Virus record (IMG/VR): IMGVR_UViG_3300042473_001265
Coordinates: 62,001-126,000 of that record
Reading direction: 5' to 3' (one strand)
DNA length: 64,000 nucleotides
A program made the position numbers and the translations under genes. Shown in pieces: positions 1 to 44,420 of the stretch (the first letter of the stretch is position 1; each line of letters begins with the position of its first letter). The notes beneath the pieces are model-generated. The model was not told the origin of the DNA, did no database searches, and saw only the letters and a list, made by a program, of their open reading frames with translations.

Positions 1-705
1 AGTCAGCGGGCCCATTGCGCTGGAAAGAAGAAGCAAAACGAAAGCGCAGAAATGGAAATGGTGTGTGAAATGTGTGGCCTGTGTGAAACACACGGCGATC
101 ATTCACAGGACAACTTGGATGAAGCATGCTGGGACACACACAAACAAGTTGGTATGAAGAAAAAAAGCAACAAAATGGTTCCCAACTGTGTGCCTAAAAA
201 CGAAGAAAAGGAGACCGCAATGACAGAAAATCAAGATGAATTGGCAAGAATACTGGAACTCAGCACAGGAGTAAGTGCAACAGATCGCGTGGAACTAAAC
301 GAAGAGTTTGATCTAATAGAGTCTATCATTGACAGTCTTGCAGATCGCAATGGGGTAGATGCAGAGACAATATGGGAAGACCTCGACTCACTGACAGATG
401 ATGAGTTGTATGTGTTTGCAGTGACTACGCCAATCATGGAAGATTGGCAAAAGGCCAACAAAAAGGATCGTACTGCCGGCATGAGTCAGAAAGCTGTCAA
501 CGCTTATCGCAGAGAAAATCCCGGGTCCAAACTAAAGACTGCTGTAACTACCAAGCCCAGCAAATTAAAGAAAGGTTCGAAGGCGTCGAAACGTCGTAAG
601 AGCTATTGCAGCCGCAGCCGTGGTCAAATGAAAATGCACAGCATCAGCTGTGCTAAAACTCCGGACAAGGCCATATGCAAAGCACGCCGTAGATGGAACT
701 GCTGA
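1..705 (+). CDS. 5'-truncated modular, basic phage protein, putative virion-internal polyprotein
   Basis: Frame is open from base 1 (SQRAHCAGKKK...) to TGA at 703-705. Short modules joined at x-x-E junctions; Lys/Arg/Cys-rich C-terminal module (KRRKSYCSRS...KARRRWNC). Confidence 0.7.
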   Translation, partial: SQRAHCAGKKKQNESAEMEMVCEMCGLCETHGDHSQDNLDEACWDTHKQVGMKKKSNKMVPNCVPKNEEKETAMTENQDELARILELSTGVSATDRVELNEEFDLIESIIDSLADRNGVDAETIWEDLDSLTDDELYVFAVTTPIMEDWQKANKKDRTAGMSQKAVNAYRRENPGSKLKTAVTTKPSKLKKGSKASKRRKSYCSRSRGQMKMHSISCAKTPDKAICKARRRWNC

Positions 706-706
706 C

Positions 707-994
707 ATGAGACTGTATGAATTTGCATTCGGTTCCGGCGTGGACGTCAATGAAAATCTTCGCGACTGGTTCAAAGATAAATGGGTACGCTTTGGTCCCG
801 ATGGTAAGATACGCGGCGACTGTGCTAGAGGGTCAGAATCTGAAGGCAAGCCCAAGTGTTTGCCACAGTCCAAAGCACATGCACTGGGCAAGAAAGGTCG
901 TGCAAGTGCAGCAGCCAGAAAACGCAGACAAGATCCCGACGCCAATCGTTCAGGCCCAGCAATAAATGTCAGTACAAAAGGAAAGAAAAAATGA
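707..994 (+). CDS. small basic phage protein (MRLYEF...WFKDKWVR module)
   Basis: ATG at 707 directly follows the previous stop; stop overlaps the next ATG (ATGA at 991-994). Confidence 0.7.
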   Translation: MRLYEFAFGSGVDVNENLRDWFKDKWVRFGPDGKIRGDCARGSESEGKPKCLPQSKAHALGKKGRASAAARKRRQDPDANRSGPAINVSTKGKKK

Positions 995-2529
995 ACATAA
1001 ATGATATCATTACAGAATCACAACAAAAATGTCCGCACTGTGGTGGACCTGTGGTGGAATATTCAGAACTAGGCGAGGGCAAAAAAGATGCCTGCTACTA
1101 CAAGGTCAAGGCATCGGCCAAAGTATGGCCCAGTGCCTATGCATCCGGTCGATTAGTTCAGTGTCGCAAAAAAGGTGCTGCCAACTATGGCAACAAGTCA
1201 GAAGGTGTGGCGGAAGGCTTATTAAACGAATTCGCACCAGGTGGAGCTGAAGGTGCTGGACCATATGCATATGGTATAGCTCTAAAAGAAATGGCAAAAT
1301 TGTATGCTGAAGGTGAGTTTGATTTAGTTGACGTCAGCGGCATGGACACAACAAGTCAAAACCAAAGTGATGCCGAAGAAATAAACAGCGTAGCAGATGC
1401 TTTTATCAATCGTGGAATGGAAGCTGGTAGAGAAGCATACCGCATGGTTGACACCATGGTGCAAGAGGACATGGATGAATACCTTGACGGCCAAGGATTC
1501 AATGTTGATGCTGATATCCATGTTGCATACAAAAATGACGTTGACCGTTATAATGCTTCTCCAGAGGGTCAGGCAGGAATCGCTGCGCATGAGGCTCGAC
1601 GAGAAGCCTGGCGGCGGTCAAAGCCGGCCAACCAAGTGATAATACAAGCAATTGATCCCAAAGGCAATTTGCCCATTGACAACACTCGCGTAGTGTTTGA
1701 TGCTAGAGAGTTTAACCTTGAGCCTGGCTTTCTTAAATACTCAATTGAACAAGATATTAAAAAGATCAAAAAGACAGCACCCGGTAGCTTGATTCAAATC
1801 ACCTTGGGCGGCAAACCAACTGATATTCAGGGTATTCTTGACCAATATAAACAGCTCAGCAAGGGGCCACACGATGTGGCGGAAAACTTTGCTGATGGGC
1901 GAAATCCCCAAGACAAGGGCGATGCCAAGCGTCACGGTATCAACACCAAGGCCAGTGTAAGCAGTCTACGCAAAACTGCCAAGCAAGGTGGACGCAAGGG
2001 ACAACTGGCACACTGGCTGGCCAACATGAAATCAGGCCGAGCCAAAAACGAAGGTGTGACAGAAAACACCGAGCCAGAAATGTTGTTCTACGCCAAATTG
2101 CCAGAGGGCACAAAAGTATATGCACGAGTAAAAGATGAACAGCAGTTGGCCAATCTACAACAACAGTATCGCGGCGCTGAAATCAAGACTTTTGATTTTC
2201 AGCGTCCTGATGTGCAGAAATGGCTGGAGGCCCGCAGAATCAATCTACGCAAATTTACACCGGGTATGGTACAAACCATGTATGATGTGATGGAAGCAGC
2301 ACACACCACCAATTTTAACGACGACGACTGGTATGAAATCAATCCTGACACCAAGACCATTGTGAGTCAGCGCGGGCCGCAGGCATATCACATGCCGTTT
2401 GGACAGCGACAGATCACCCTGCCCAATGGCAACATAGTTGTCAGAGGCATGCGAGCCAAAGGCATGGGTCTGGACACCGGACTTGGCAAACCGCAACAGA
2501 AAGAAGACGGTACCTGGGGCGCACTGTAA
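991..2529 (+). CDS. modular phage polyprotein, putative virion-internal protein
   Basis: ATGA-coupled start MNINDIITE. Modules separated by GVAEG, LNEF, VAEN, VTEN and VMEA junctions. Confidence 0.7.
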   Translation: MNINDIITESQQKCPHCGGPVVEYSELGEGKKDACYYKVKASAKVWPSAYASGRLVQCRKKGAANYGNKSEGVAEGLLNEFAPGGAEGAGPYAYGIALKEMAKLYAEGEFDLVDVSGMDTTSQNQSDAEEINSVADAFINRGMEAGREAYRMVDTMVQEDMDEYLDGQGFNVDADIHVAYKNDVDRYNASPEGQAGIAAHEARREAWRRSKPANQVIIQAIDPKGNLPIDNTRVVFDAREFNLEPGFLKYSIEQDIKKIKKTAPGSLIQITLGGKPTDIQGILDQYKQLSKGPHDVAENFADGRNPQDKGDAKRHGINTKASVSSLRKTAKQGGRKGQLAHWLANMKSGRAKNEGVTENTEPEMLFYAKLPEGTKVYARVKDEQQLANLQQQYRGAEIKTFDFQRPDVQKWLEARRINLRKFTPGMVQTMYDVMEAAHTTNFNDDDWYEINPDTKTIVSQRGPQAYHMPFGQRQITLPNGNIVVRGMRAKGMGLDTGLGKPQQKEDGTWGAL

Positions 2530-2565
2530 CACCCACAGCCGCAGCAGATTCTCATAAGTAACAGT

Positions 2566-2754
2566 ATGAAAGCCAAAGAAATCATCAGCGGAGCAAAACT
2601 ATGGACTGCAAAGATCCGTATTGAAAACCCACGCTATGTTTCTTTGGTTGATGTAACAACCTGGGCTCCCAACGCAGCAACAGCCCGTAATATCTTTAAA
2701 TCCCAATATAATATTCAAGATTGGCACATCGGGTCAATCAAACAAGTTCAGTAA
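2566..2754 (+). CDS. hypothetical protein
   Basis: 62-aa ORF preceded by a TAAGTA late-promoter-like motif. Confidence 0.6.
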   Translation: MKAKEIISGAKLWTAKIRIENPRYVSLVDVTTWAPNAATARNIFKSQYNIQDWHIGSIKQVQ

Positions 2755-2772
2755 ACTGCTACTAAATACAGC

Positions 2773-3054
2773 ATGAAACAGTTTGTTCGTGTATTGTGTG
2801 ATGTCAGTTGTGACTGGACAGGTACGCCGCCGGTGTACCGTGTGTATGTGGACGACGAATTGTTTGCTGAACGCACCTGGATCTGGCGTGATCAATATCT
2901 GGAAGAAGCGTTGCAAATTGAAGCTGAGCCCGGTGAATACACCATCACATATCAACTGGACAACACAGACACAGCAGTCATCCATGCTGACAACATGCGT
3001 GTGGATTATGGCACAGGCAAAATTAAAAACAATATATTAAGGATCAGCCGATGA
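2773..3054 (+). CDS. hypothetical protein
   Basis: 93-aa ORF preceded by TAAATA; stop overlaps the next start. Confidence 0.6.
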   Translation: MKQFVRVLCDVSCDWTGTPPVYRVYVDDELFAERTWIWRDQYLEEALQIEAEPGEYTITYQLDNTDTAVIHADNMRVDYGTGKIKNNILRISR

Positions 3055-3248
3055 GAGCAGCTGAATTCGTCAAAGAAGACGCCTCCGGAGGCAGCACCAG
3101 TGCTGGCTCCATTGCCCCTGTGGCCATGCCGCTAGGTGGAACGATCACAAGAACTGGTGGCAGTTTCTTTTCTGGTAAATACACAACGGATCCAACACCC
3201 AATACTCCGAGCTATATGAAAAAAGGAAAGAAACGCCGTGCTAACTGA
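3051..3248 (+). CDS. small protein with a capsid-targeting-like N-terminus (MRAAEFVKE)
   Basis: 65-aa ORF translationally coupled on both sides. Confidence 0.6.
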   Translation: MRAAEFVKEDASGGSTSAGSIAPVAMPLGGTITRTGGSFFSGKYTTDPTPNTPSYMKKGKKRRAN

Positions 3249-3678
3249 ACAACTAAAAACCTTGCTTGCAAGCCAATTTGCTTACTATTTAAAAGCTCAA
3301 TACTTTCACTGGAATGTGGAAGGATCAGACTTTGCACAACTACACAAATTCTTTCAAAAAATCTACGAAGATGCCTACAGCGCCGTGGATCCCATAGCCG
3401 AATACATTCGCAGTCTAGATGAATACGTCCCGGGCAGTCTTGCTCGTTATGCTGAATTATCAATCATACAAGATCAAACAAAAGTGCCACGGGCCAAACT
3501 GATGATACAAGAACTGCTGGCCGACAGTGAACCAATGATTGCTCTGTTAAACAGTTGCTTTGCTGAGGCAGAAGCTGAAAACAAACAGGACATTGCCAAC
3601 TTCATGGCTGAACGATTGAGTCAGCAGAACAAATATGCCTGGCAATTGCGCAGTTTCTTAAAGGACGCTAGGGAGTAA
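3238..3678 (+). CDS. dps: Dps / ferritin-like DNA-protection protein
   Basis: Dps signature YFHWNVEG..F..LH.FF..IYE...D.IAE.IR; GTG start. Confidence 0.85.
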   Translation: MLTEQLKTLLASQFAYYLKAQYFHWNVEGSDFAQLHKFFQKIYEDAYSAVDPIAEYIRSLDEYVPGSLARYAELSIIQDQTKVPRAKLMIQELLADSEPMIALLNSCFAEAEAENKQDIANFMAERLSQQNKYAWQLRSFLKDARE

Positions 3679-3679
3679 C

Positions 3680-4378
3680 ATGGACGAAATCTACACTATA
3701 ATGCAACGCCTGGCCTTGATTGAAGGCAGCATTACTCCTGCCAGTGTCAAAACTGGGCTGAATGCTCAACAAAAGTCGGTGCCGCAGATGCCGGCCCTGT
3801 ACAAAATGCCCAGCCAGGGTCCTGTGTTGGGCGGCAACCCCAATAAAAAAGTTCCAGGCAGCAGCTACATGGTCGGCTCAGGTGAAGGTGTAGACAATCC
3901 AGAAGATGTGTTGGAAGAAGAGGTCACCATCGAAGACCGGTTAGACAAAGTTAAAAAATCTTTTGCCGAGTATCTTGACAGTGTTGCTGAGGAAAAACAC
4001 GACACGGACTTGAAAGAAAAAGTCAAGAATGACAGTGACATCAAAGAAAAAAATACCAAAGACTCCAGCATCATAGCCAAACAGATTGTTGCTGTTGCAG
4101 AAAATCCAACAGAAGAAGATCCTGTTGTTCAGATGCCCACTGCCCCGGTTCAAGAACCCATCTACACAGAATCAGCACCGGTCAAGACACTGGCCTTGGA
4201 AGACGGTCGTGTGTGCGAAATACACGGCGACGAGCGTCGTGGATTTGAAATACGACACAACGGCCGTTCAATGAAGAGCCGTTTTAAAAATTTAGACCAA
4301 GCACACATGGCATTGGAAATGTATCTGGGGCGTGACAAAGCAACAGACGAGTCAGCAGATTATATAGAGGAAGCATAA
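3680..4378 (+). CDS. hypothetical acidic phage protein
   Basis: 232-aa ORF tightly packed between its neighbours. Confidence 0.65.
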   Translation: MDEIYTIMQRLALIEGSITPASVKTGLNAQQKSVPQMPALYKMPSQGPVLGGNPNKKVPGSSYMVGSGEGVDNPEDVLEEEVTIEDRLDKVKKSFAEYLDSVAEEKHDTDLKEKVKNDSDIKEKNTKDSSIIAKQIVAVAENPTEEDPVVQMPTAPVQEPIYTESAPVKTLALEDGRVCEIHGDERRGFEIRHNGRSMKSRFKNLDQAHMALEMYLGRDKATDESADYIEEA

Positions 4379-7300
4379 TGATTTTAAATGAGCTGTATAA
4401 ATTAAACGAGTTGAGTCCAGACACCTTGGCCAGTTACAAAAAAGCTGCTGGTGCCGATGCCACTGCTGCTGATGCGGCCGGTGATTATGCTCGTGGCAAC
4501 AAGAGATTCAAGGGCATTGTCAAAGCAACCAAGAAACAGTTTGCCAACGATACCAAAGGTGTGACAGAAAACCGTGAGTACAGTTCAGTGACCAATGCTA
4601 TCACTCGCAGAATCATAACACAACATCCCGAAGTGTTGGCCAAATACGGCCCCGATGTGGTTGGAATGGCCATTGACGAAATTGCAGACTTCGTAGGCGA
4701 TGTTGACGAAATTGGGTCAAGCGATGTTTCGGGCTGGACCAGTCAACTCATTCGTAGTCTGGCTAGATTTCCTCCGCTAAGAGAGCAAGGTGTGGCGGAA
4801 AAGTTAGGCGATAATAGACCCAAACTAGGCAGCGGTCGCGATCGTGGCAAGAGTGTTCGCAAATGGCGCCAGGACCGTGGCCTGGACGAGTCGGGCATGG
4901 CGGGAGGTCATAATAATTCTAAAACAATAATTACTGAGCCAAACAAACGCATACGAATTGACGAATCCTTGCTGTTGCAAGATCCTGTTTATCGCAGTTT
5001 CAAGCAAGTGGGACGCTATCTTGCCGAACGCCGCATGAGCGAAAAAGAAATTCTACAGGTGTTTGCCGACGCAGAAGCAGGAATGACCAACACAGCAACT
5101 GGCACTAATCGTACCATGCTGGGACGCGGCAAAGACAAGGCCACAGATCTTGCAGCCAGTATCAGAGATTCGGTCAACACGGTGTTGAGCGGTGTACAGA
5201 ATTCTGTGCCTGTGTCAGCAGTTGACACTGCTTATGATCAGGCCACTGATGCCCTGGCTGGCCTGGCCGGCGGACAAAAAGGTGCAGTAATGCAGGCGAT
5301 CAAAAAGTATCGCATGCTGGTAAAGAAATATCCCAAGTCTGCTGGATTTGCCAAAGCAGCATTGGTGGCCATTACAGGCCTGGCCACAGGTGGTGCAAGT
5401 CTTCCAGTCATTGCTGGCCTAACCTATGCCCTGGACGCAGCAATCAAAGGCGAAAAACTAAGCAGTGTGTTTGGCAAAGGTGCAGGTGCAGCAGCATTGG
5501 CCTGGGCAGGTCAATCTATTGCTGGTATGTTTGGGGCAGACCCAGCAGCTGGTGCGGCGGCCGCTGGTACCGATCCAGCTGCCGCGGCGTCTACATTTGT
5601 ACCTGGTCCTGACTTGCCTACATACACTGTGCAAGCCGGCGACACACTGAGTCAGATTGCTCAAGCAAACGGTGTATCGGTACAAGAACTAGTTGGGCTA
5701 AATCCACAATTGGCAGCAGACGCTGGCGCAGTAGGTGGCCAGAATCTCAATCCTGATGTGATATTTCCTGGACAAGAAATCACCTTGCCGCCTGCATCAG
5801 GAGCCGACGTTTATGCCGGCGGCGTGGGTACCAATGCCAACACCATGGCCGACATTGCCAAAGGCAATGTGCCTGACAGTTCTATCACACAAACTGGAAG
5901 CCTGGAACGCCTAGGAGGGGTTGACGCTGCTGATGTGAGTCAAGCTGCTGCTGATCCAGGAAAATATTCTGCTCCTATTGATTACAGTCAATCAGGACCA
6001 ACCAGCACTGACTCACTGGGACAAAAATTAGAATACGGCATTCCTGTCAACGACAAGGGTAGTTTTATTCCACCAAACGCTGGTTTGCCCGCTGACGAAC
6101 TGGCCAGACAAACAGCCGCATATGATGCCTGGAAGGCAGACTTTACCAAACGTTTTCCAAGTGCTGAACTACAGCCAGACGGATCTATGAAAGCTACCAA
6201 ACCAGGCCTAGCGCCCATGTATCCATCAAACTACACACCCGGCAGCGGCGGCAGCGGTTCAATAAGACCAAAAGGATTCACAGAATCTGTCAAGTTAATA
6301 AGATTGCCGGTCAGTCAGTTGATTGACAAAAAAACAACCATCTTGAATTGGAAATTGAACGAAAGCATAGGACGCAAGAGCAAAACTGTGAACTTAACCA
6401 CTGCTGGCGCCTACACAGTGTTTGAAAACGTTGACCGATACCGTAAAGCCATCATGGAACTCAAGGGTGTGCCTGGAAGCACACGCCCGGCATTGTATCG
6501 TCCCGACATGGCGGGTGCTCCAGTTGCACCTGCAGCCAAAAAACCCGGCCTGCTGAGCCGTGGGCTCAGCAAAGTAGGTGGTGCACTGAGCACATTTGGT
6601 CGTCAATTTACTACCAACGTGACCAAAGAAAAACTCAAGATGAACTGGCATCAAAAGGGAAAACCCAGTGATTCAGATCAATTGGCTGCTTGGTTGGTCA
6701 CACAAGGCGTGCCACAAGAAGTGGTAACTTCAGTTTACAGTAAAATGGGTCTACCAGTTGCTGCTGCTACAGTAACAGCTACACCAACAGCACCAACAGT
6801 AGCTACGCCAACAGCACCGACAACTGCTACACCAACAGCACCGACAACTGCTACACCAACAACAGCTACCGCCACTACAACCAAGCCAACAGCACCCGCA
6901 GCAGCAGCTGGCAAATTTCCAGGTGAGGATCCACAAGGTGCTGGCTATGTTGGTCGTAGAGAAGTTGCTCGTCGTCAAGCTGCGCGAGCTGCAGGTGCTG
7001 CTAAACCTGCACCTGCCAAGACTCCTAATTTCAGTGGCCCTACTGGATATTCCAGTGTGAATACCACAGTCAAACAACCAGCAAAACAACCAGCTGTGGC
7101 GGAAGGTGCCATGCCAGCGGCAGTGATTCGAATCAAAGAAAAAATTCGTCAAATGTCCGACGCCGAAAAGAAAGAATACTTCCAAGGCAAGACACGAGAG
7201 CAATTGCAACAACTGGCTCGACGACATGGCTACGGCGAAAATAGCAATGTGTACGCCAAGTATGCTGCACAAGGCCTGAATGAATTTGCTCCCGGTTCAG

Positions 7301-8778
7301 GTGGTGGCGACGACGACATCGGCGATGATCCTTACAAGTATCCCACGCCAGAGTCATATCGTCGCAGTGCGGATTACTTTGGTCAATTTGAAGCAGATCA
7401 TTTTGATCGTGAAGACTTTGATGATGCCACTGGCGTGTTCAAAGGCTACTGGGGTGATAAACAGATCGCCTATTTCAAATTTAATAAGCCAACTCAAACT
7501 GGCGGCGACGACCCGGGTCGGGGCTGGTACTATGAACCCCAGTCAGACAGCAGTGACAACACCGGTACTGGACCTGCAGTTGATCGGTCTGATGAACGCA
7601 AGCAACAAGAGTTAGGCATGATCCGTGCGTTTTTAAAATCTGGCAATCGACCAAATCCAGACAGTCAAATTGGTCGATTGATGAAAAAACATGGCATAGA
7701 GGAAGATCTAAGCCGCAGAGGATTCTTACAAGGCTTAGGTGCAGCAGCCGCTGGTGCTGTTGGCGTTGGCGCTGCTGGTTCTGCTCAAGCACGATCAACC
7801 GATGCGTCACGAAAAGAAGATGCTGAGGCCTTGGCATTACTGGCCAAAGGTATGACTCCTGAACAAGTTGCTAAAAAATTAGGAGTTCCTGGACCAAATC
7901 ACGGGCAGACCCATCATATGGGTGGTCGGTGGGCTTCAATCAATCGGGCTGCGGCGCAGCTTCAACGACAACGAGGCGCTGAGATAAAAGAAGGTGTGTC
8001 AGAGTCAGCAGGCGACGAGTTAGAATCCATGTTGAAGTCTGCTGGACTCCCGATCAGGGCCATACATGAGGCTGCTCCTCGCTCCAACCAGATCTGGACA
8101 GGAAATAAGCCAGCAGCTACATTGCCAACAACAACAGCAGCGGCGGCAGCTCCCAAAAAACCTGGATTGCTAACACCAAATAAATCTAAAGAAGCTGCTT
8201 ACGCAGCAGCAAATAAAGCTAAAGCAGCAGCACCTGCGCCAGCAGCAGCAGTACCTGTAGCTGCACCTGTAGCTGCGCCAGCAGCATCTGTGGCTGCAAA
8301 AGAACCAACACCTGATTCACCAACTGCTAGATATAGCGGCAAGACTGGTGAGTTAACTGCTTACGGCGCAGAATTAGCAGCGAAAGAAAAAGCTGATATA
8401 CAAGCTGCCCAAGCAGCAGCAGCAGCAAATAAAGCTAAAGCAGCACCAGCTGCACCTGTAGCTGCGCCAGCAGCACCAACAACGACTGGCATGTTTCAGC
8501 CGCGAACAACTTCACCAGCAACTAATCCAGCAGGTAAGAAAGTAGATATTGTGCAAGCAGCAAACACTGCCATGGCCGCAGGTGGAAATCCAGAAGCCGC
8601 AGCAATAGCTGCAATGAAGGCTAAAAATCCTAAATTAGCTGCAATGATGGCACAGGCAGGATTAGATGATCAAGGTAATGATATTGCAGCAGCACCTGTG
8701 GCGGAAGATTCTCTTGCTGGCATGAAAAGATTAGCGGGCATTGCGTCTGTTAGCCCATACAACAAACTTGTTAACTGA
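4378..8778 (+). CDS. 1466-aa modular protein with a LysM domain, Ala/Pro/Thr-rich linkers and an internal twin-arginine-like segment
   Basis: LysM motif YTVQAGDTLSQIAQANGVSVQELVGLNP...IFPGQEITLP at 5623-5790; hydrophobic Gly/Ala segment at about 5340-5580; many x-x-E junctions. Confidence 0.8.
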   Translation: MILNELYKLNELSPDTLASYKKAAGADATAADAAGDYARGNKRFKGIVKATKKQFANDTKGVTENREYSSVTNAITRRIITQHPEVLAKYGPDVVGMAIDEIADFVGDVDEIGSSDVSGWTSQLIRSLARFPPLREQGVAEKLGDNRPKLGSGRDRGKSVRKWRQDRGLDESGMAGGHNNSKTIITEPNKRIRIDESLLLQDPVYRSFKQVGRYLAERRMSEKEILQVFADAEAGMTNTATGTNRTMLGRGKDKATDLAASIRDSVNTVLSGVQNSVPVSAVDTAYDQATDALAGLAGGQKGAVMQAIKKYRMLVKKYPKSAGFAKAALVAITGLATGGASLPVIAGLTYALDAAIKGEKLSSVFGKGAGAAALAWAGQSIAGMFGADPAAGAAAAGTDPAAAASTFVPGPDLPTYTVQAGDTLSQIAQANGVSVQELVGLNPQLAADAGAVGGQNLNPDVIFPGQEITLPPASGADVYAGGVGTNANTMADIAKGNVPDSSITQTGSLERLGGVDAADVSQAAADPGKYSAPIDYSQSGPTSTDSLGQKLEYGIPVNDKGSFIPPNAGLPADELARQTAAYDAWKADFTKRFPSAELQPDGSMKATKPGLAPMYPSNYTPGSGGSGSIRPKGFTESVKLIRLPVSQLIDKKTTILNWKLNESIGRKSKTVNLTTAGAYTVFENVDRYRKAIMELKGVPGSTRPALYRPDMAGAPVAPAAKKPGLLSRGLSKVGGALSTFGRQFTTNVTKEKLKMNWHQKGKPSDSDQLAAWLVTQGVPQEVVTSVYSKMGLPVAAATVTATPTAPTVATPTAPTTATPTAPTTATPTTATATTTKPTAPAAAAGKFPGEDPQGAGYVGRREVARRQAARAAGAAKPAPAKTPNFSGPTGYSSVNTTVKQPAKQPAVAEGAMPAAVIRIKEKIRQMSDAEKKEYFQGKTREQLQQLARRHGYGENSNVYAKYAAQGLNEFAPGSGGGDDDIGDDPYKYPTPESYRRSADYFGQFEADHFDREDFDDATGVFKGYWGDKQIAYFKFNKPTQTGGDDPGRGWYYEPQSDSSDNTGTGPAVDRSDERKQQELGMIRAFLKSGNRPNPDSQIGRLMKKHGIEEDLSRRGFLQGLGAAAAGAVGVGAAGSAQARSTDASRKEDAEALALLAKGMTPEQVAKKLGVPGPNHGQTHHMGGRWASINRAAAQLQRQRGAEIKEGVSESAGDELESMLKSAGLPIRAIHEAAPRSNQIWTGNKPAATLPTTTAAAAAPKKPGLLTPNKSKEAAYAAANKAKAAAPAPAAAVPVAAPVAAPAASVAAKEPTPDSPTARYSGKTGELTAYGAELAAKEKADIQAAQAAAAANKAKAAPAAPVAAPAAPTTTGMFQPRTTSPATNPAGKKVDIVQAANTAMAAGGNPEAAAIAAMKAKNPKLAAMMAQAGLDDQGNDIAAAPVAEDSLAGMKRLAGIASVSPYNKLVN
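6781..6861 (+). repeat. 24-bp coding tandem repeat (TPTAPTTA), about 3 copies
   Basis: Near-identical units of acaccaacagcaccgacaactgct. Confidence 0.8.
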
Positions 8779-8782: not shown

Positions 8783-9142
8783 ATGAGAGCTAGTGAATTT
8801 GCAATTGTGAAAGAAGGTGCAGTGGAGGATCTTGAAAAAGATCTCGACGATCCTAAGGGTTACAGCGCAATTGACCACATGATGCAGACCATTGCCAGAG
8901 ACCACGGCATCACCGGCAAACAATTGCACGATGCGTTTGTGGCCAAGCATGGCGTGATACCTGACCGGTGGACACGAGATCAACTGCGCGAATTGACTTT
9001 TCTTGGATCAGAATGCACCCGAGACTGTTCGGGACACAGAGCCGGATATGACTGGAGCAAACGCAAAGGACTAAAGCTGGGCAATAGTCCATGGAGTCCC
9101 AGTTTCAACAAAGGCGCTGCACTAGCAGTGGCAGGAAAATAA
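8783..9142 (+). CDS. hypothetical two-module protein (MRASEFAIVKE...)
   Basis: ATG at 8783 follows the stop at 8778; C-terminal CTRDCSGHRAGYDW module. Confidence 0.65.
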   Translation: MRASEFAIVKEGAVEDLEKDLDDPKGYSAIDHMMQTIARDHGITGKQLHDAFVAKHGVIPDRWTRDQLRELTFLGSECTRDCSGHRAGYDWSKRKGLKLGNSPWSPSFNKGAALAVAGK

Positions 9143-39005: not shown

Positions 39006-39095
39006 GGAAGCGTGGCAGAGTCCGGTTTATTGCAGCAGTCTTGAAAACTGCCGGCTCGAAAGGGTCCGTGAGTTCGAATCTCACCGCTTCCACCA
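39006..39095 (+). tRNA. tRNA-Ser(TGA)
   Basis: Cloverleaf with long variable arm, loop CTTGAAA, encoded CCA. Confidence 0.95.
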
Positions 39096-39104
39096 ATGCA
39101 ATTT

Positions 39105-39179
39105 GCGGCCATAGTATAACGGATAATACAGCGGTCTTCTACACCGTGAATGTGGGTTCGATTCCTGCTGGCCGCGCCA
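39105..39179 (+). tRNA. tRNA-Arg(TCT)
   Basis: Loop CTTCTAC, T-loop GGTTCGATTCC, CCA. Confidence 0.93.
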
Positions 39180-39184
39180 AACAT

Positions 39185-39270
39185 GCCCCCATAGACAAAT
39201 TGGTAAAGTCACTCTCCTCAAAAGGGAGTATTTTAAAAAAATCTGAGTTCGAATCTCAGTGGGGGCACCA
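39185..39270 (+). tRNA. tRNA-Leu(CAA)
   Basis: Loop CTCAAAA, AT-rich variable arm, CCA. Confidence 0.9.
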
Positions 39271-39311
39271 ATGGTTGACAAAGATCAACAAACAAGTTAT
39301 AATAGAACAAT

Positions 39312-39398
39312 GCTCTGATGGTGAAATAGGTAGACACAAGAGACTTAAAATCTCTCGCTCGCAAGGGTGTGCCGGTTCGATTCCGGCTCGGAGCACCA
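39312..39398 (+). tRNA. tRNA-Leu(TAA)
   Basis: Loop CTTAAAA, long variable arm, CCA. Confidence 0.95.
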
Positions 39399-39441
39399 TT
39401 TAAATAAGTCAGTTAATCAAGTTAAATTAAAGAAAGCAATC

Positions 39442-39615
39442 ATGACCCCAACAAAAACTTTTAAGTTCAGCAAGCGCAACAAAACATTGATGACCTTGCT
39501 GCCATTCAAAGATCAAACCATACGCAATGCGTTCAAGCGCATGATGGTTGATGCACAGCTATGCAGCGGTGTTGTTGTCAAAAGCAGCAAGGATCGTGGC
39601 ACAGATAGCAAGTAA
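39442..39615 (+). CDS. small basic hypothetical protein within the tRNA block
   Basis: 57-aa ORF MTPTKTFKFSKRNK... between two Leu tRNAs. Confidence 0.55.
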   Translation: MTPTKTFKFSKRNKTLMTLLPFKDQTIRNAFKRMMVDAQLCSGVVVKSSKDRGTDSK

Positions 39616-39623
39616 AGATATAT

Positions 39624-39700
39624 GCCCTGGTGGTGAAATTGGTAGACACAGCGGTCTTAGAAGCCGTAAGCTGAGAGTTCGAGTCTCTCCTAGGGCACCA
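39624..39700 (+). tRNA. tRNA-Leu(TAG)
   Basis: Loop CTTAGAA, short variable arm, CCA. Confidence 0.9.
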
Positions 39701-39722
39701 AGTATATAAAAGCAATCACACT

Positions 39723-40196
39723 ATGCCAAAATGTTATCAACTGATCGGAGTGCCTGCATCGGGCAAAACCACTTGGTACCGTAACCAAGAGTGGTTGGGT
39801 GAAGATAAAAAAGATCACAAGTATGTGTCCACAGATCAGCATGTGGAAGGATATGCCAATGATCAAGGCAAAACCTACAGTGAAGTGTTTGAGGAATACA
39901 TGCCCACTGCTGTCAAACAGATGCTGATAAATGTTAACATGGCTGCGGCATATCAGTTAGATATTGTTTGGGATCAGACCAGCACCACAGTTAAAAGCCG
40001 TCGAAAGAAGTTTGTTGAGTTGCCCAACTATGAGCACATTGCTGTGGTATTTCGGACACCCGATGCACCGGAACATGCTCGCAGATTAAACAGTCGTCCG
40101 GGCAAGCACATTCCTGATGAAATAGTACAAGATATGATCATCAAATTTGAAATGCCTACCGAAGAAGAAGGGTTTGTTGAAATCTGGCATGTGTAA
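39723..40196 (+). CDS. P-loop kinase (AAA_33 / polynucleotide-kinase-like)
   Basis: LIGVPASGKTT and IVWDQTS..R motifs. Confidence 0.85.
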   Translation: MPKCYQLIGVPASGKTTWYRNQEWLGEDKKDHKYVSTDQHVEGYANDQGKTYSEVFEEYMPTAVKQMLINVNMAAAYQLDIVWDQTSTTVKSRRKKFVELPNYEHIAVVFRTPDAPEHARRLNSRPGKHIPDEIVQDMIIKFEMPTEEEGFVEIWHV

Positions 40197-40203
40197 TACT
40201 GGG

Positions 40204-40689
40204 TTAGGCTCTGGATAGCATTACCAGGCTGAGAAAAAATGCCGGAATTGCAATGGCCACAAAACAAGAAAACACAAGAAATGTTTGTAATATGTCTTCT
40301 TGTGCTTTGCGATTGGCTGCTGCCATTTTTCTTTCAACTTCTGCTCGTTCTTTGTACATACGCACTCGCTCGGACTGCATTTGATCCCAGACATCTTTGT
40401 TGCCGGACCAGATCAGCATTTCTTTAAGTTCTTTTTCAGCGTCCCGCAGTGCTTTGCTGTGCATGGCAGTTTGCAAAGATCTTGAAGCAATTTCTCCATT
40501 GCTCAGCAAAGAAGTAGAATTCATCAGCTTGACATTGGCCACATAAACTTTGTCGCAATTTTGAAAAAATGAACTAAACTGTCCGTATAAGCTGTTGATG
40601 TCTTTGCCCATGGCAATGGCTTTTTTAATGCCGCCAATTGCTTGCTGTGCCGCAGTGAATGCCAGGCCAATTGTCACAGGGTCAATCAT
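40204..40689 (-). CDS. hypothetical protein with hydrophobic termini
   Basis: 161-aa ORF MIDPVTIGLAF..., coupled to 40686-40880. Confidence 0.6.
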   Translation of the reverse strand: MIDPVTIGLAFTAAQQAIGGIKKAIAMGKDINSLYGQFSSFFQNCDKVYVANVKLMNSTSLLSNGEIASRSLQTAMHSKALRDAEKELKEMLIWSGNKDVWDQMQSERVRMYKERAEVERKMAAANRKAQEDILQTFLVFSCFVAIAIPAFFLSLVMLSRA

Positions 40690-40880
40690 GATCGTAGAAT
40701 ATAAGGTTTAAATTGCTTTTCCCAGCGTCGACACCAAACTTCTCTATTGGGAGCTTGGCCCGACCAACTCCACAGTGTACACACCCATTGTTCATTCTTG
40801 TCTAATTTTTCCGTTGGTGGTGCCACAGCATTTAATGCTGTAGAGCCTGCCAACAACACAAACAACAAAGAATATTTCAT
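40686..40880 (-). CDS. small secreted hypothetical protein
   Basis: Signal-peptide-like N-terminus and a WVCTLWSW..WCRRW motif. Confidence 0.55.
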   Translation of the reverse strand: MKYSLLFVLLAGSTALNAVAPPTEKLDKNEQWVCTLWSWSGQAPNREVWCRRWEKQFKPYILRS

Positions 40881-40926
40881 TTACTATATTTAACTATAGT
40901 ACGATATAATTACAACAGCCGTTTGA

Positions 40927-40955
40927 TTGACTGCAAAGCCACAATCTGCTATAAT
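40927..40955 (+). promoter_or_regulatory. sigma70-type promoter
   Basis: TTGACT-N17-TATAAT before the phosphoesterase gene. Confidence 0.7.
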
Positions 40956-40986
40956 ATAGGTTACAACGCAAGAAAAGGAGGGCAAG

Positions 40987-41589
40987 ATGCCTAGTGTATT
41001 TTTAGTCAGCGACACGCACTTTGGACACATGGGTGTATGCCGCTTTACCCGCAACGATGGTGTCACCAAATTACGCCCGTGGGATAGTGCTGAGGAAATG
41101 GACGAAGCCATGGTCACGGCCTGGAACAAACGAGTTAAACCCACGGACAAGGTATATCACTTGGGTGATGTGGTTATAAACCGCAAAGCATTAAAGACTC
41201 TGGCCAGATTGAACGGCGACAAGGTGTTAATCCGTGGCAACCATGATATCTTCCGTGATGAAGAGTATCGTGAATACTTTCGTGAATTACGGGCGTACCA
41301 TGTGATGAACGGCATGATCCTTAGCCACATTCCTGTACACAGTGACAGCTTGGGGCGTTTTGGCGTCAACATACACGGACATACTCACGCAAATCGTGTA
41401 CGCAAAGCCCGTGGAGTTGATGCTAGAACTGGTGAAATCTTGTACAGCGACGAGATTGATCCACGCTATCATTGTGTATGCGTGGAACAGACTGACTTTG
41501 CACCGATACTGTTTGAAGATGTGATCAAACGCATCGAAGCAGAAGGTGGGTCAGTGGGTTTTCGTAACGGCAATGGTCCTACAATGTAG
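40987..41589 (+). CDS. calcineurin-like metallophosphoesterase
   Basis: SDTHFGH, HLGDVV, IRGNHD, LSHIP and HGHTH motifs. Confidence 0.92.
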   Translation: MPSVFLVSDTHFGHMGVCRFTRNDGVTKLRPWDSAEEMDEAMVTAWNKRVKPTDKVYHLGDVVINRKALKTLARLNGDKVLIRGNHDIFRDEEYREYFRELRAYHVMNGMILSHIPVHSDSLGRFGVNIHGHTHANRVRKARGVDARTGEILYSDEIDPRYHCVCVEQTDFAPILFEDVIKRIEAEGGSVGFRNGNGPTM

Positions 41590-41604
41590 GCCTGGAATTT
41601 TAAA

Positions 41605-41682
41605 GTAGCGGTGGCAGAGAGGCCCAATGCAAGGGATTGCAAATCCCTAAAACCGTGAGTTCGAATCTCACCCGCTACTCCA
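41605..41682 (+). tRNA. tRNA-Cys(GCA)
   Basis: Loop TTGCAAA, U73, CCA. Confidence 0.93.
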
Positions 41683-41803
41683 GTTAATTCACAGTTGAAT
41701 TTTAAAGAGTAAATAGAGTAGTCAGAGTGCAGGCTCTTTTTAAATCCTGCCTTTGTGTGGTACCGAGCAATGCTCCTGCTTGTATAAGCATCGGTACACT
41801 ATT

Positions 41804-41877
41804 GCGGGATTCGTAAAATGGTATTACCTTAGATTTCCAATCTAAAGTCGGGGGTTCGATTCCCCCATCCCGCTCCA
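41804..41877 (+). tRNA. tRNA-Gly(TCC)
   Basis: Loop TTTCCAA, U73, CCA. Confidence 0.93.
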
Positions 41878-41906
41878 GTTTTTATGTTGATCGATTTGAG
41901 AAAATT

Positions 41907-42407
41907 ATGCAAACCATTAATCTTGTAAAAGTAAAACAATTCATAGAAGCACAAGGCCCAATGACTCGCATCTATTTGGGTTGCGACAGCGAACGAATCC
42001 GAATCAACAACGAATGGTGGGCCGATTACACACTGGCCATTGTGGTGCATATCAACGGCAACAGCGGATGCAAGATATTTGGCGAAGTGTGCCGCGAGCG
42101 TGACTATGATCAAAAAACTGCACGGCCCAGCATGCGACTGATGAACGAAGTGTACAAAGTTTCTGACATGTATCATCGGCTGGGCGAAGTGCTGAACGGC
42201 CGAGAAGTGGAAGTACACTTGGACATCAATCCAGACGAACGCCACGGATCCAGCTGTGTGATTGCACAGGCCATTGGCTATATAAAAGGAACCTGCAACA
42301 TAACACCATTGGTCAAACCCGAAGCGTTTGCTGCCAGTTATGCTGCGGATCGCTTCAAAGGATTGGCCACTGCACGACATCGTGTTCGAGTCAATGAACG
42401 AGTTTAG
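41907..42407 (+). CDS. RNase H-like YkuK/DUF458 family protein
   Basis: IYLGCDS, RLMNEVYK, EVHLDIN and AASYAAD pattern. Confidence 0.75.
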   Translation: MQTINLVKVKQFIEAQGPMTRIYLGCDSERIRINNEWWADYTLAIVVHINGNSGCKIFGEVCRERDYDQKTARPSMRLMNEVYKVSDMYHRLGEVLNGREVEVHLDINPDERHGSSCVIAQAIGYIKGTCNITPLVKPEAFAASYAADRFKGLATARHRVRVNERV

Positions 42408-42494
42408 GAAGTGTGGCTGAGTGGCCTAAGGCAGCTGATTACTAATCAGTCATATCGCAAGGTATCGTGGGTTCGAATCCTACCACTTCCGCCA
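42407..42494 (+). tRNA. tRNA-Ser with the rare anticodon ACT
   Basis: Ser-type long variable arm and G73; stem GCTGA/TCAGT with loop TTACTAA; CCA. Confidence 0.85.
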
Positions 42495-42500
42495 ATGTTA

Positions 42501-42526
42501 AAAAGGCTACTTTGATAGCCTTTTTT
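42501..42526 (+). terminator. intrinsic terminator after tRNA-Ser(ACT)
   Basis: AAAAGGCTA-ctttga-TAGCCTTTTTT. Confidence 0.7.
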
Positions 42527-42561
42527 CTTGACTTTTAAACAAAAGGCATATATAATACACT

Positions 42562-42660
42562 ATGATTACGCAAATCACATTCACTGCTAACAACACGCCG
42601 GCCATCTATGAGATAGCCTATGAGCGTGATTGTCCCAGGGGTCTTTGCCATTGTAGTTAA
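42562..42660 (+). CDS. leader peptide 2 (32 aa) of a putative tRNA-operon attenuator
   Basis: MITQITFTANNTPAIYEIAYERDCPRGLCHCS; TATAAT at 42549 suggests a near-leaderless start. Confidence 0.7.
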   Translation: MITQITFTANNTPAIYEIAYERDCPRGLCHCS

Positions 42661-42682
42661 CAAAAGTACTACATTCACAAAG

Positions 42683-42707
42683 ACCCGCTAACTAGGCGGG
42701 TTTTTTT
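42683..42707 (+). terminator. attenuator terminator 2
   Basis: ACCCGC-taactag-GCGGGT plus T6; GGGTCTTTG (42639) pairs perfectly with CAAAGACCC (42678), which overlaps the stem. Confidence 0.8.
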
Positions 42708-42717
42708 ATGGCGCTGG

Positions 42718-42746
42718 TAGACACAAAATCGCATCAGTGCTATAAT
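42718..42746 (+). promoter_or_regulatory. sigma70-type promoter of tRNA block 2
   Basis: TAGACA-N17-TATAAT. Confidence 0.65.
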
Positions 42747-42760
42747 ACACACATAACAGC

Positions 42761-42801
42761 AGCAAACGATCGAGTAGCTGAAGAGAATTCTTTAAAAATT
42801 T
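42761..42801 (+). promoter_or_regulatory. boxB-like hairpin plus boxA-like element
   Basis: AGC-AAACGATCGAGTA-GCT, then TTCTTTAAAAATTT resembling rrn boxA (TGCTCTTTAACAATTT). Confidence 0.55.
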
Positions 42802-42830
42802 ACTAATATTTTTTCTTGCTACGGCAAGAA

Positions 42831-42964
42831 ATTATATTGAAACACATTTTCAATCTGAATTGACAGATACAAACAACCAAGGGGAGCCGCTGGACTTGAG
42901 CCAGGTTCATCCTGAATTGACAGGAACAAGGTTGTAAGGGGAGCCGAGTGCGTTTCAATATAAT
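42831..42964 (+). ncRNA. inverted-repeat-bounded RNA cassette with an internal direct repeat
   Basis: ATTATATTGAAACAC...GCGTTTCAATATAAT arms; two CTGAATTGACAG...AAGGGGAGCCG units inside. Confidence 0.55.
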
Positions 42965-42970
42965 AAATTT

Positions 42971-43045
42971 GGAGCATTCGTCTATCGGTTAGGACAGTGG
43001 GTTTTCAGTCCACTAAGAGCGGTTCGACTCCGCTATGCTCTACCA
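42971..43045 (+). tRNA. tRNA-Glu(TTC)
   Basis: Loop TTTTCAG, CCA. Confidence 0.92.
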
Positions 43046-43052
43046 TGTTTTT

Positions 43053-43139
43053 GGATGTGTAGGAAAATTGGTAACCCCAGGAGACTGTAAATCTTCCGTC
43101 GTAATGGCATTGTTGGTTCAAGTCCAACCTCATCCACCA
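43053..43139 (+). tRNA. tRNA-Tyr(GTA)
   Basis: Loop CTGTAAA, variable arm, CCA. Confidence 0.93.
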
Positions 43140-43142
43140 AAT

Positions 43143-43370
43143 ATTTCTCGTCAGAGCCCTAATGCAAATCCTGTGGGCGATGAATTAACAAGGCTGCATA
43201 GATGCTTGCAGTATATTGTCGGTGAAGTTCCGACCGGGAAACGAAATCAAGTGGAAAGCAAGAGCCACAAAGTAAACACCGCCGGGTCAGAAAATGTGTC
43301 CGGGACGTATGGGTCGCGCAGCCTATACAAACAACGGTGGGGTAAGAGTCCTCATAACATTTTCACAAAT
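43143..43370 (+). ncRNA. unidentified multi-hairpin RNA candidate
   Basis: Hairpins GCCC/GGGC, CTGCA/TGCAG, GTCGG/CCGAC, GTGG/CCAC and CACCG/CGGTG between two tRNAs. Confidence 0.4.
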
Positions 43371-43373
43371 TTA

Positions 43374-43448
43374 GGTGCGTTCATATAACGGTCATTATCC
43401 TGGATTGTCTATCCAGAGACGGGAGTTCGACTCTCCCACGCATCGCCA
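43374..43448 (+). tRNA. tRNA-Asp(GTC)
   Basis: Loop TTGTCTA, G73, CCA. Confidence 0.92.
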
Positions 43449-43456
43449 AGTTAACA

Positions 43457-43533
43457 GGCCCTTAGCTCATGTTGGTTAGAGCAGCAGACTCATAATCTGT
43501 TGGTGCTGTGTTCGACTCACAGAGGGCCTACCA
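43457..43533 (+). tRNA. tRNA(CAT), probably Ile2 (lysidine type)
   Basis: Loop CTCATAA; GGCCCTT acceptor resembles E. coli ileX. Confidence 0.8.
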
Positions 43534-43539
43534 AGTTTT

Positions 43540-43712: not shown

Positions 43713-43777
43713 AGTTTAAGAGTTCGTCTAGAAACCGGTAAATTGTAGTTTGGTCTACAAGCTCTTAATTAGTTTAT

Positions 43778-43870: not shown

Positions 43871-43941
43871 AATTTGCAGTTTTTGTCTGGAGTAATATTC
43901 CTGGACACGGATAAAAACAGAAATGTTCTGCGCCAAGTTAT

Positions 43942-44011: not shown

Positions 44012-44014
44012 AGT

Positions 44015-44238: not shown

Positions 44239-44246
44239 TTCAATAT

Positions 44247-44407: not shown

Positions 44408-44420
44408 AGATACTTACTTG

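Follow-up and report, generated by a model that had tools for sequence, protein, structure and literature searches.

The decamer TGTGGCGGAA is the core of an approximately 20-nt in-frame linker, AG CAA GGT GTG GCG GAA GGC (E-Q-G-V-A-E-G), found in hundreds of contigs of T4-like phages from lake water, which separates small protein cassettes, probably encodes a cut site for the head protease and is the place where cassettes are swapped between phages. The genome analyzed here is that of a 340-kb T4-like jumbo phage from lake water; the window, a stretch of 64,000 nucleotides of this genome, contains exactly five copies of the decamer, all on the + strand and all in frame as GTG GCG GAA (V-A-E), two of them in ORF 856-2529 and three in ORF 4378-8778 (see the table). 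A first-pass annotation had noted these five copies at module junctions and the unusual Ala codon, and had proposed a recombination crossover site for swapping effector modules. The observation is confirmed and this interpretation is supported, with three qualifications: the probable role at the peptide level had been missed, the term "effector" is unproven since most cassettes have no known function, and the data show that crossovers lie in the motif but not that the motif causes them, nor which enzyme acts. The designation as module junctions is well supported for sites 1 and 2, supported for sites 3 and 4, and weaker for site 5.

Features of the linker-containing locus. Positions are those of the window; G000 is the whole phage genome, L numbers are related loci and X numbers are lake-metagenome contig sets.
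Position	Strand	Feature	Sequence or leader	Supporting observations
1206..1215	+	Linker core copy 1 (residues 118-120 of ORF 856-2529), between cassette A (zinc-ribbon-like, 1018-1215) and cassette B (1216-1884)	GAA GGT GTG GCG GAA GGC (1201-1218)	DNA homology of L010-L013, L016, L021 and L092/93 ends at 1214-1219; metagenome contigs diverge at 1215/1217/1219 (downstream) and at 1200/1202 (upstream)
1875..1884	+	Linker core copy 2 (residues 341-343 of ORF 856-2529), between cassette B and cassette C (1885-2064), a 60-aa basic module more than 90% conserved in many phages	GAT GTG GCG GAA AAC	51 distinct homology end-points at 1868-1882; L010 homology restarts exactly at 1875; contigs diverge upstream of 1875
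4791..4800	+	Linker core copy 3 (residues 139-141 of ORF 4378-8778), between cassette F (4570-4800) and cassette G (4801-4938)	GAG CAA GGT GTG GCG GAA AAG (full consensus 5' half)	tblastn matches end at residue 141 (L149-152) or start at 136 (L098); L098 DNA homology starts at 4784; contigs diverge after 4800 in X13 and X17
7095..7104	+	Linker core copy 4 (residues 907-909 of ORF 4378-8778), closing the long LysM/PT-rich segment (4939-7104) and opening cassette I (7105-7284)	GCT GTG GCG GAA GGT	Homologies end at 7061-7100 (L010, L095/96, L111-113), downstream ones start at 7155 or 7276; L010 itself has no linker at this point; moderate support
8697..8706	+	Linker core copy 5 (residues 1441-1443 of ORF 4378-8778), 24 codons before the stop, followed by a short tail that looks like the start of another cassette	CCT GTG GCG GAA GAT	Tail resembles the N-terminal leaders M..L..LK(K/R)LAG(I/V)NE of stand-alone genes in other loci; no DNA breakpoint seen; weakest of the five
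2053..2067	+	Variant linker (GVTE|N) between cassettes C and D	GGT GTG ACA GAA AAC	Many homologies end at 2031-2064; 5 distinct GGTGTGACAGAA contexts in relatives
4558..4572	+	Second copy of the variant linker (identical 15-mer), between cassettes E (4411-4569) and F	GGT GTG ACA GAA AAC	L010 homology (91% identity) ends at 4572, where L010 carries the exact TGTGGCGGAA
856..2529	+	Multi-cassette gene 1; mechanical ORF start GTG 856, likely start ATG 991 with an AAAGGAAAG ribosome-binding site	MNINDIITE (991-1017)	Modular matches at residues 1-121, 118-322 and 341-403; no Pfam family; PHROG matches confined to the first cassette
4378..8778	+	Multi-cassette gene 2 (1466 aa), with LysM (5623-5790), a PT-rich spacer and a weak HTH match	MILNELYKLNE (4378-4410)	
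7705..7791	+	Internal Tat-like signal peptide inside gene 2, immediately after GIEE	DLSRRGFLQGLGAAAAG (beginning)	Direct reading
8783..9142	+	Stand-alone cassette gene with a T4-CTS-like leader	MRASEFAIVKE (8783-8815)	Related stereotyped leader MRAKEF..E in 17 contexts
1..705	+	3' part of a stand-alone cassette gene (starts at G000 61920, 80 nt before the window) with a DUF6321 C-terminus	MKTKEFTTE	The same cassette (GWSQKYKKSINCSHP...) follows a QGVAE linker in L045

The number of copies is not explained by codon usage. Dinucleotide shuffles gave a mean of 0.10 copies and a maximum of 1, and 1000 synonymous-codon shuffles of all called genes gave a mean of 0.48 copies genome-wide (maximum 3, none reaching 5) and of 0.03 in the two genes, against 5 observed. 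GCG accounts for only 7.5% of Ala codons in this genome; of 43 in-frame VAE tripeptides genome-wide, six use GCG and five of these are the sites described here. The whole genome of 340,172 bp holds one further copy, at G000 20643 on the - strand and antisense to an ORF, which we treat as noise since about 0.65 copies are expected by chance. One might suspect assembly chimeras, in which assemblers join unrelated contigs at a shared short word, as a 20-nt shared word equals k-1 for k = 21 graphs. However, the same arrangement is carried identically by three other IMG/VR contigs assembled from different samples, and it also occurs in independent k = 31 contigs from four other lake samples, with 0 mismatches across motifs 1 and 2 (X13 record 4, 1188-4498). 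All copies are moreover in frame within long ORFs (median 556 codons), and we regard this explanation as all but excluded.

In related loci the linker is the most repeated word, with more than 300 distinct contexts, almost all of them sense and in frame. An unbiased scan of 12-mers ranked it first, with 62 distinct contexts, and the sequence logo is conserved from -8 to +11, third codon positions included. GGTGTG-GCG-GAA has 302 distinct contexts against 14 for the next codon, and 69 of 118 GVAE peptides in relatives are encoded by the identical 12-mer, against 0.6% expected. In the related loci first retrieved, 180 copies are sense and 4 antisense. A role of the conserved bases in RNA or translation was also considered, such as a pause at the rare GCG codon that sits exactly at domain boundaries, internal initiation at the GTG preceded by AAGG, or an RNA processing or structure signal. 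Even given GCG, however, GTG is used in 84% of cases against 23% expected, and GGT and CAA are also fixed, whereas AAGG lies only 1 nt from GTG, too close for a ribosome-binding site. The five sites share no common fold (z-scores of -0.17, -2.93, 0.31, 0.23 and 1.16), no Rfam family matches at the sites and the phage's own tRNAs read all the linker codons. An RNA function would in addition predict synonymous conservation in vertical descent, which is not seen (see below), and this reading appears very unlikely.

Comparison with related phages reveals that module gain, loss and replacement breakpoints fall on the motif. Against L010 (91% identity), the homology blocks 737-1218 and 1875-4572 end on linkers. 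Of 233 distinct homology end-points, 68 lie within 12 nt of the five copies, against 2.9% expected (p = 7e-48). Overall, about 1900 module homologies stop or start at linkers and only 27 cross them. In 13 of 14 pairs of homologous cassettes bounded by two linkers the flanks are unrelated, and identity begins at GTGGCGGAAGG and ends after the next linker. Independent lake-metagenome contigs diverge at motifs 1, 2 and 3, and one of them joins motif 1 directly to the sequence that follows motif 2; no linker-to-linker joints were seen within the window's own strain, as far as assembled contigs can show. It should be noted that selection would retain in-frame, domain-preserving recombinants wherever the crossover occurred, which inflates the clustering of breakpoints at linkers. 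Vertically inherited junctions, in a small sample, show no excess synonymous conservation, so that selection for a DNA function in place is not demonstrated and the identity of the linkers looks regenerated by exchange rather than held by purifying selection.

On the other hand, the motif might be only a peptide signal, a protease site or flexible spacer, whose identical DNA would be a passive trace of common descent from one duplicated linker. The absence of excess synonymous conservation just mentioned and the observation that variants differ mainly at third positions (GTA, GCA, GAG), as neutral decay predicts, would agree with this view, as would the evidence for a peptide-level role given below. 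Passive descent cannot, however, place an identical 12-20-mer between more than 300 unrelated pairs of flanks whose own synonymous sites are saturated. Since the same cassettes are bounded by linkers in unrelated contexts, the linker was the crossover point; moreover, other x-x-E junctions serve the peptide role with quite different codons. We therefore consider this possibility improbable.

At the peptide level the linker ends in hydrophobic-x-Glu, the type of site cut by the T4 prohead protease gp21. The phage encodes a protein of this family (Peptidase_S77, PF03420, 84.9 bits, G000 197443-197898) that matches the T4 gp21 structure 5JBL at E = 7e-13 with the His, Ser and Asp positions aligned, and genes for a Gp23 capsid protein, portal and scaffold are adjacent. 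Cassette C is preceded in 48 contexts by x-x-E, which is either a linker or a leader such as MKVSEILE, indicating that linker and N-terminal leader are interchangeable. The leader MRAKEF(I/V/L)x(x)E, which occurs in 17 contexts and includes MRAKEFIAE, and the leader MKTKEFTTE resemble the T4 capsid-targeting sequence, presumably MKTYQEFIAE, whose removal by gp21 has been described (PMC5694885, PMC3012670). In 21 of 21 Tat-like signals in related loci a Glu lies 2-4 residues before the RR, and this Glu follows a linker, another x-x-E site or a Met-leader; cleavage after Glu is thus inferred, in the absence of proteomic or biochemical evidence that the linker is cut or that the cassettes are in the virion. 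Modelling of the protease with the linker gave no answer. The third residue before the cut is Val in the linker, and Thr, Ala or Asp at some inferred sites, whereas T4 gp21 prefers Leu or Ile, and no T4-type late promoter was seen upstream of these genes.

Taken together, we favor with moderate confidence an explanation in which the linker works on two levels. The polyprotein would be cut after Glu into separate small proteins, as T4 internal proteins lose their N-terminal leader, and the cassettes would be head-packaged proteins delivered with the DNA. Since every cassette boundary carries the same 10-20 nt in the same frame, recombination between any two linkers, in co-infecting phages or within one genome, would delete, insert or replace whole cassettes without breaking the frame or the cut site, possibly with an excised circle as an intermediate. 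Each exchange would regenerate an exact linker, and linkers that stop exchanging would decay at synonymous sites. The breakpoints are observed, whereas this mechanism is inferred. The simplest agent is the phage's own T4-type recombination system, which includes a RecA/UvsX homologue; T4 recombination needs only short patches of homology (PMC2839356, citing Singer 1982), although 10-20 nt is short for efficient homologous recombination.

Alternatively, a dedicated sequence-specific enzyme might recognize the roughly 12-nt core, either a site-specific recombinase acting on att-like sites or a homing-type endonuclease that cuts linkers in co-infecting genomes and so drives cassette conversion, general homologous recombination then playing no special part. 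Indeed, crossovers are confined to a core of only about 10-13 identical bases, the core is invariant while both linker flanks vary, and exact linkers persist in genomes from 30 to 51% GC. T4-like phages carry many homing endonucleases, and this genome has an HNH gene next to the capsid gene. However, no recombinase or endonuclease gene was found next to the polyprotein genes among the ORFs scanned, without an association test across genomes, the core has neither the dyad symmetry nor the spacer typical of recombinase sites, and all copies are direct repeats. We consider this unlikely, though not excluded. In its furthest form, which is likewise doubtful, the linker would be the attachment site of a dedicated in-frame cassette-exchange system, a protein-domain counterpart of the integron: a specific recombinase or nuclease would excise cassette-plus-linker circles and insert them at any linker in a co-infecting genome, so that lake-water jumbo phages would trade a shared pool of head-delivered effector domains, each insertion arriving already equipped with its protease cut site.

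T4-type phages were already known to shuffle whole genes through intergenic promoter-terminator cassettes and adhesin segments through conserved in-frame motifs. The present analysis extends the principle to autonomous protein domains inside polyproteins, in an abundant uncultivated lake-water clade; no prior description of this was found in the literature searched. It provides sequence-level evidence of how large phages may assemble and constantly reshuffle their arsenal of small, probably injected, proteins. In practice, scanning for the 17-20-mer delimits hundreds of candidate head-delivered cassettes, mostly of unknown function, of use for anti-defence screening, and the design, if confirmed, would also suggest a natural scheme for building cleavable multi-payload phage cargo.

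Among known systems, the T4 internal proteins (IPI, IPII, IPIII, Alt) share with the present genes short N-terminal leaders ending in hydrophobic-x-Glu, in a phage with a T4-type head module and a gp21 homologue, and highly diverse payloads behind a stereotyped targeting and cleavage element; the T4 proteins are diverse anti-restriction proteins that have only the targeting sequence in common (PMC3012670). Here, however, many payloads are strung into one ORF and separated by an internal linker that replaces the leader and is conserved at the nucleotide level across hundreds of contexts, and Pfam and PHROG searches, without direct comparison with the T4 proteins, gave no such family for the two genes. 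The PeSL cassettes (promoter-early stem-loops) of T4-type phages (PMC2839356, PMC4122927) are likewise short conserved DNA elements in direct orientation that flank small accessory modules, and recombination between copies deletes, inserts or replaces the modules; whether the general T4 system or a dedicated factor acts was likewise left open by the authors. PeSLs are nevertheless intergenic regulatory units, a sigma-70-like promoter plus a terminator hairpin, that move whole genes and give rise to mini-circles, whereas the linker is coding, in frame, has no hairpin or promoter and moves protein domains inside genes. The glycine-rich motifs of the T2/T6-type gp38 adhesin (PMC3157838) are also conserved in-frame motifs separating variable segments that are swapped between phages, but they form the structural core of a single folded domain in which motifs and segments are essential and kept in order; the cassettes described here occur in nearly unique combinations and also as stand-alone genes, and their linkers are probably removed by cleavage.

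Polyvalent proteins of phages and conjugative elements (Iyer et al. 2017, PMC5512222) are multi-domain proteins predicted to be delivered with the DNA and processed into units, and some cassette types are shared with them, namely a ParB-like DGNHR cassette in L271/L272, peptidoglycan-binding modules and a zincin-plus-amidoligase giant protein just upstream. Their processing is attributed to a built-in zincin-like peptidase domain, and no conserved inter-domain linker, peptide or DNA, is described; a Pfam search found no such peptidase domain in the two genes, although the neighbouring 1509-aa protein has M48/M78-like matches. In the shufflon (R64 Rci/sfx), in-frame repeats in inverted orientation give inversions, whereas the copies here are direct. 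Integrons (attC x attI, IntI) also comprise arrays of small promoterless cassettes in one orientation, each bounded by a recombination site, and the same cassette is found in unrelated arrays. However, attC sites are imperfect palindromes of 57-141 bp acted on by a tyrosine recombinase and the cassettes are whole genes, whereas the linker is a non-palindromic coding sequence of 10-20 nt for which no integrase is known, no recombinase having appeared among the ORFs scanned near the locus.

Analysis of the 64-kb window, which corresponds to bases 62,001-126,000 of a 340,172-bp virus record at 44.6% GC, confirms that TGTGGCGGAA occurs exactly five times, whereas dinucleotide shuffles give a mean of 0.10. 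Every copy reads T GTG GCG GAA in frame, as V-A-E. One further copy is found in the whole genome, antisense to an ORF, and, since about 0.65 copies are expected by chance, it is considered to be noise. GCG makes up 7.5% of Ala codons, and of 43 in-frame VAE tripeptides in the genome six use GCG, five of which are the sites described here. In the first-pass annotation it had been proposed that this conservation goes beyond the peptide and reflects a crossover site for swapping modules, and that codon shuffling and the mapping of breakpoints in relatives would test this. In 1000 synonymous-codon shuffles we obtained a mean of 0.48 copies genome-wide (maximum 3) and 0.03 in the two genes, against 5 observed. 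The observation is thus correct, and the inference of a DNA-level crossover site is supported by both of the proposed tests, as detailed below. The features concerned are collected in the following table.

Coordinates of the linker copies and of other features of the locus (G000, whole virus record; L288, locus just upstream of the window)
Feature	Coordinates	Strand	Remarks
ORF with linker copies 1 and 2	window 856-2529		557-aa product
ORF with linker copies 3 to 5	window 4378-8778		1466-aa product
Linker core copy 1	window 1206	+	
Linker core copy 2	window 1875	+	
Linker core copy 3	window 4791	+	
Linker core copy 4	window 7095	+	
Linker core copy 5	window 8697	+	
Further copy of the 10-mer	G000 20,643		antisense to an ORF
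Ferritin-like/Dps-type protein	window 3238-3678		between the two polyprotein genes; Pfam Ferritin, 78.9 bits; PHROG 'DNA binding protein'
LysM module	window 5623-5790		
Tat-like signal peptide	window 7705-7791		
Sub-threshold isrG match	window 8186-8386	-	Rfam
Array of 30 tRNA genes	window 39006-49369	+	dense, covering most amino acids
'tmRNA*' called by ARAGORN	window 49362-49767		overlaps tRNA-Pro, looks doubtful
DnaJ and ClpB/Hsp104-type chaperone	L288 813-3929 (G000 48813-51929)		adjacent; DnaJ with J domain plus C-terminal domain, chaperone with double AAA
1509-aa protein	L288 8055-12584 (G000 56055-60584)		zincin-like peptidase (M48/M78) and Amidoligase_2 matches; 2.3 kb upstream of the linker-bearing genes
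One-mismatch linker variant (AAT GTG GCT GAA GAT)	G000 57851		within the 1509-aa protein
HNH-endonuclease-like ORF	G000 200383-201249		directly downstream of the major capsid protein gene

The genome encodes a T4-type head module consisting of a portal protein, an acidic core protein, a Peptidase_S77 (gp21) prohead protease, a scaffold protein and a Gp23 major capsid protein (328 bits). The protease was identified at 84.9 bits and matches the T4 gp21 structure 5JBL at E = 7e-13, with the His, Ser and Asp positions aligned. The location of the HNH-endonuclease-like ORF next to the capsid protein gene is one often taken by mobile endonuclease genes in T4-like phages. A family-B DNA polymerase, a RecA/UvsX homologue and about 30 tRNA genes are also present. 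All 24 sequencing runs that hold the stretch are lake-water metagenomes. On the other hand, tblastn searches with the 1466-aa protein and with cassette C, the module that follows linker copy 2, found nothing among 50,697 phage records, and comparison by blastp of all called proteins of the genome against each other revealed no repeats among the cassettes.

Relatives of the two proteins in IMG/VR match in pieces, namely residues 1-121, 118-322 and 341-403 of the 557-aa product and, among others, residues 8-64, 9-141, 185-895 and 965-1200 of the 1466-aa product, and the boundaries of these pieces fall on V-A-E or on G-V-T-E. In the 158 loci retrieved (1.88 Mb) the exact 10-mer occurs 180 times on the coding strand and 4 times on the other, in 86 distinct contexts whose flanks are unrelated. 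A sequence logo shows conservation from -8 to +11, including the third codon positions, and defines a linker of about 20 nt, AG CAA GGT GTG GCG GAA GGC, or E-Q-G-V-A-E-G. An unbiased count of 12-mers in distinct contexts ranks this word first by a wide margin. Of the 118 GVAE peptides in these loci, 69 are the identical 12-mer, whereas codon usage predicts 0.6%, and with all loci pooled GGTGTG-GCG-GAA has 302 distinct contexts, against 14 for the next codon. The loci range from 30 to 51% GC, with one at 66%, and nearly all copies lie in long open frames (median 556 codons).

We further analyzed where homology between relatives is interrupted. Against the related locus L010/L120, which is about 91% identical in DNA, the homology blocks 737-1218 and 1875-4572 end on linker copy 1, copy 2 and the variant linker GGTGTGACAGAAAAC, and between copies 1 and 2 L010 carries a different 171-nt cassette. 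A third block, 6890-7094, stops just before copy 4, but L010 continues there with AP-rich sequence and has no linker, so that this is not a linker-to-linker event. Of 233 distinct homology end-points inside the two genes, 68 lie within 12 nt of the five copies, against 2.9% expected (p = 7e-48), copies 1 and 2 accounting for most of these. Across 314 distinct exact-linker sites, about 1900 module homologies stop or start at the linker and only 27 run across it. The cleanest test was provided by the 152 distinct cassettes that lie between two consecutive exact linkers and are 20-765 aa long (median 76). Fourteen pairs are homologous over their full length, at 70-97% DNA identity, and in 13 of these 14 both outer flanks are unrelated, identity beginning at GTGGCGGAAGG and ending right after the next linker. 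Examples from the related loci are L238 2584-2799(-) against L275 1286-1501(-), and L271 5247-5624 against L272 8995-9372, a mobile cassette carrying a ParB-like DGNHR motif, a domain type reported in head-packaged polyvalent proteins. These pairs are direct evidence that linker-bounded cassettes move between unrelated contexts.

Independent lake-metagenome contigs give the same picture. They confirm the junctions of the window, one of them (X13 record 4) spanning 1188-4498 with no mismatch, whereas others diverge exactly at 1215/1217/1219, 1200/1202, 1875 and 4800, and one joins copy 1 directly to the sequence that follows copy 2. Assembly chimerism is therefore excluded. Summed contig depth is several-fold higher over cassette A, which precedes copy 1, and over cassette C (1150-1349 and 1750-2149) than over neighbouring cassettes, which fits these two cassettes being shared by many co-occurring phages.

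It is interesting to note that the linker probably also has a role at the peptide level, which the first-pass annotation had not proposed. Cassette C (NFADG...), for which a search of a protein atlas returned only unnamed viral clusters, is more than 90% identical in protein across many phages, and in 48 contexts it is always preceded by x-x-Glu, belonging either to the QGVAE linker or, when the cassette opens a gene, to a leader such as MKVSEILE or MRISELLE. A stereotyped leader, MRAKEF(I/V/L)x(x)E, recurs in 17 contexts. The corresponding DNA word, ATGAGAGCAAAAGAATT (MRAKEF), opens at least 17 different cassette genes in related loci (for example L145, L086 and L227) and is often preceded by an ATAAATA box like the T4 late promoter. 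N-terminal leaders seem to be conserved at the DNA level too. In the present genome, however, the T4 late promoter sequence TATAAATA occurs only 4 times on the + strand and none of these lies upstream of the genes studied here. The genes of the window start with MKTKEFTTE, MNINDIITE, MILNELYKLNE and MRASEFAIVKE, which resemble the T4 capsid-targeting sequence, apparently MKTYQEFIAE. In T4 that leader directs internal proteins into the prohead and is removed by gp21 (PMC5694885, PMC3012670). Linker and leader are interchangeable, since the cassette GWSQKYKKSINCSHP follows MKTKEFTTE in this genome and QGVAE in the related locus L045.

The strongest indirect evidence for cleavage comes from Tat-like signal peptides (RRGFL.G.GAA...), which must be N-terminal to work. 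There are 21 of them in the loci, and all 21 have a Glu 2-4 residues before the RR, this Glu following a Met-leader, a QGVAE linker, or another x-x-E site deep inside a polyprotein. We infer from this that the polyproteins are cut after Glu, most simply by the gp21 homologue in the prohead. This remains an inference only, as neither cleavage nor packaging is proven and structure prediction of the protease together with a 41-aa linker segment gave no answer (score 0.00), counting neither for nor against cleavage. The presence of Tat-like signals inside polyproteins or behind short leaders would imply that some released cassettes are exported to the periplasm of the infected cell, and the LysM module points the same way.

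Why the DNA itself is conserved was examined next. Explanations based on RNA or translation fail: the five sites share no fold, no Rfam family matches at the sites (the only hit being the sub-threshold isrG match), AAGG lies too close to GTG to serve as a ribosome-binding site, and a pause at a rare codon would not fix GTG, GGT and CAA as well. The tRNAs of the array include Ala-TGC, Val-TAC, Glu-TTC, Gly-GCC and Gln-TTG, which together read every linker codon. Purifying selection on the DNA in place is not supported either. Indeed, in vertically inherited junctions, where both flanks are homologous, third positions of the VAE codons are no more conserved than the flanks, although few such junctions exist and the sample is small. 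The chance that a module homologue also carries an exact linker falls with divergence, from 73% at 97% identity or more to 16% at 70-80%, and variants differ mainly at third positions. An exact linker therefore marks a young or recently exchanged junction: exchange between two linkers regenerates the sequence, whereas linkers that stop exchanging decay. Cassettes with intact linkers are the mobile ones, and so are the ones seen in many contexts. The exactness of the linker thus appears to reflect turnover rather than purifying selection in place. The shared identity at crossovers is only about 10-20 nt, but T4-type recombination works on short patches of homology (PMC2839356, citing Singer 1982) and the phage has a UvsX-like gene; a dedicated nuclease or recombinase cannot be excluded.

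We found no description of this linker in the literature searched, but several known systems can be compared with it. As inferred here, the system works like the T4 internal proteins, with a targeting leader and gp21 cleavage. In PeSL cassettes, repeated short elements mediate module shuffling in T4-type genomes, with mini-circles (PMC2839356, PMC4122927); these are intergenic promoter-terminator units, whereas the linker described here is coding and in frame. The glycine-rich motifs of gp38 are in-frame conserved motifs between variable segments (PMC3157838), but they form the core of one folded domain in a fixed order, unlike the linkers here. Polyvalent proteins are attributed a built-in zincin peptidase (PMC5512222), which was not found in the two genes studied, although the 1509-aa protein encoded upstream shows a classical polyvalent protein architecture. 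Finally, with regard to integron attC sites and shufflon sfx sites, the linker has neither the structure nor the orientation of either.
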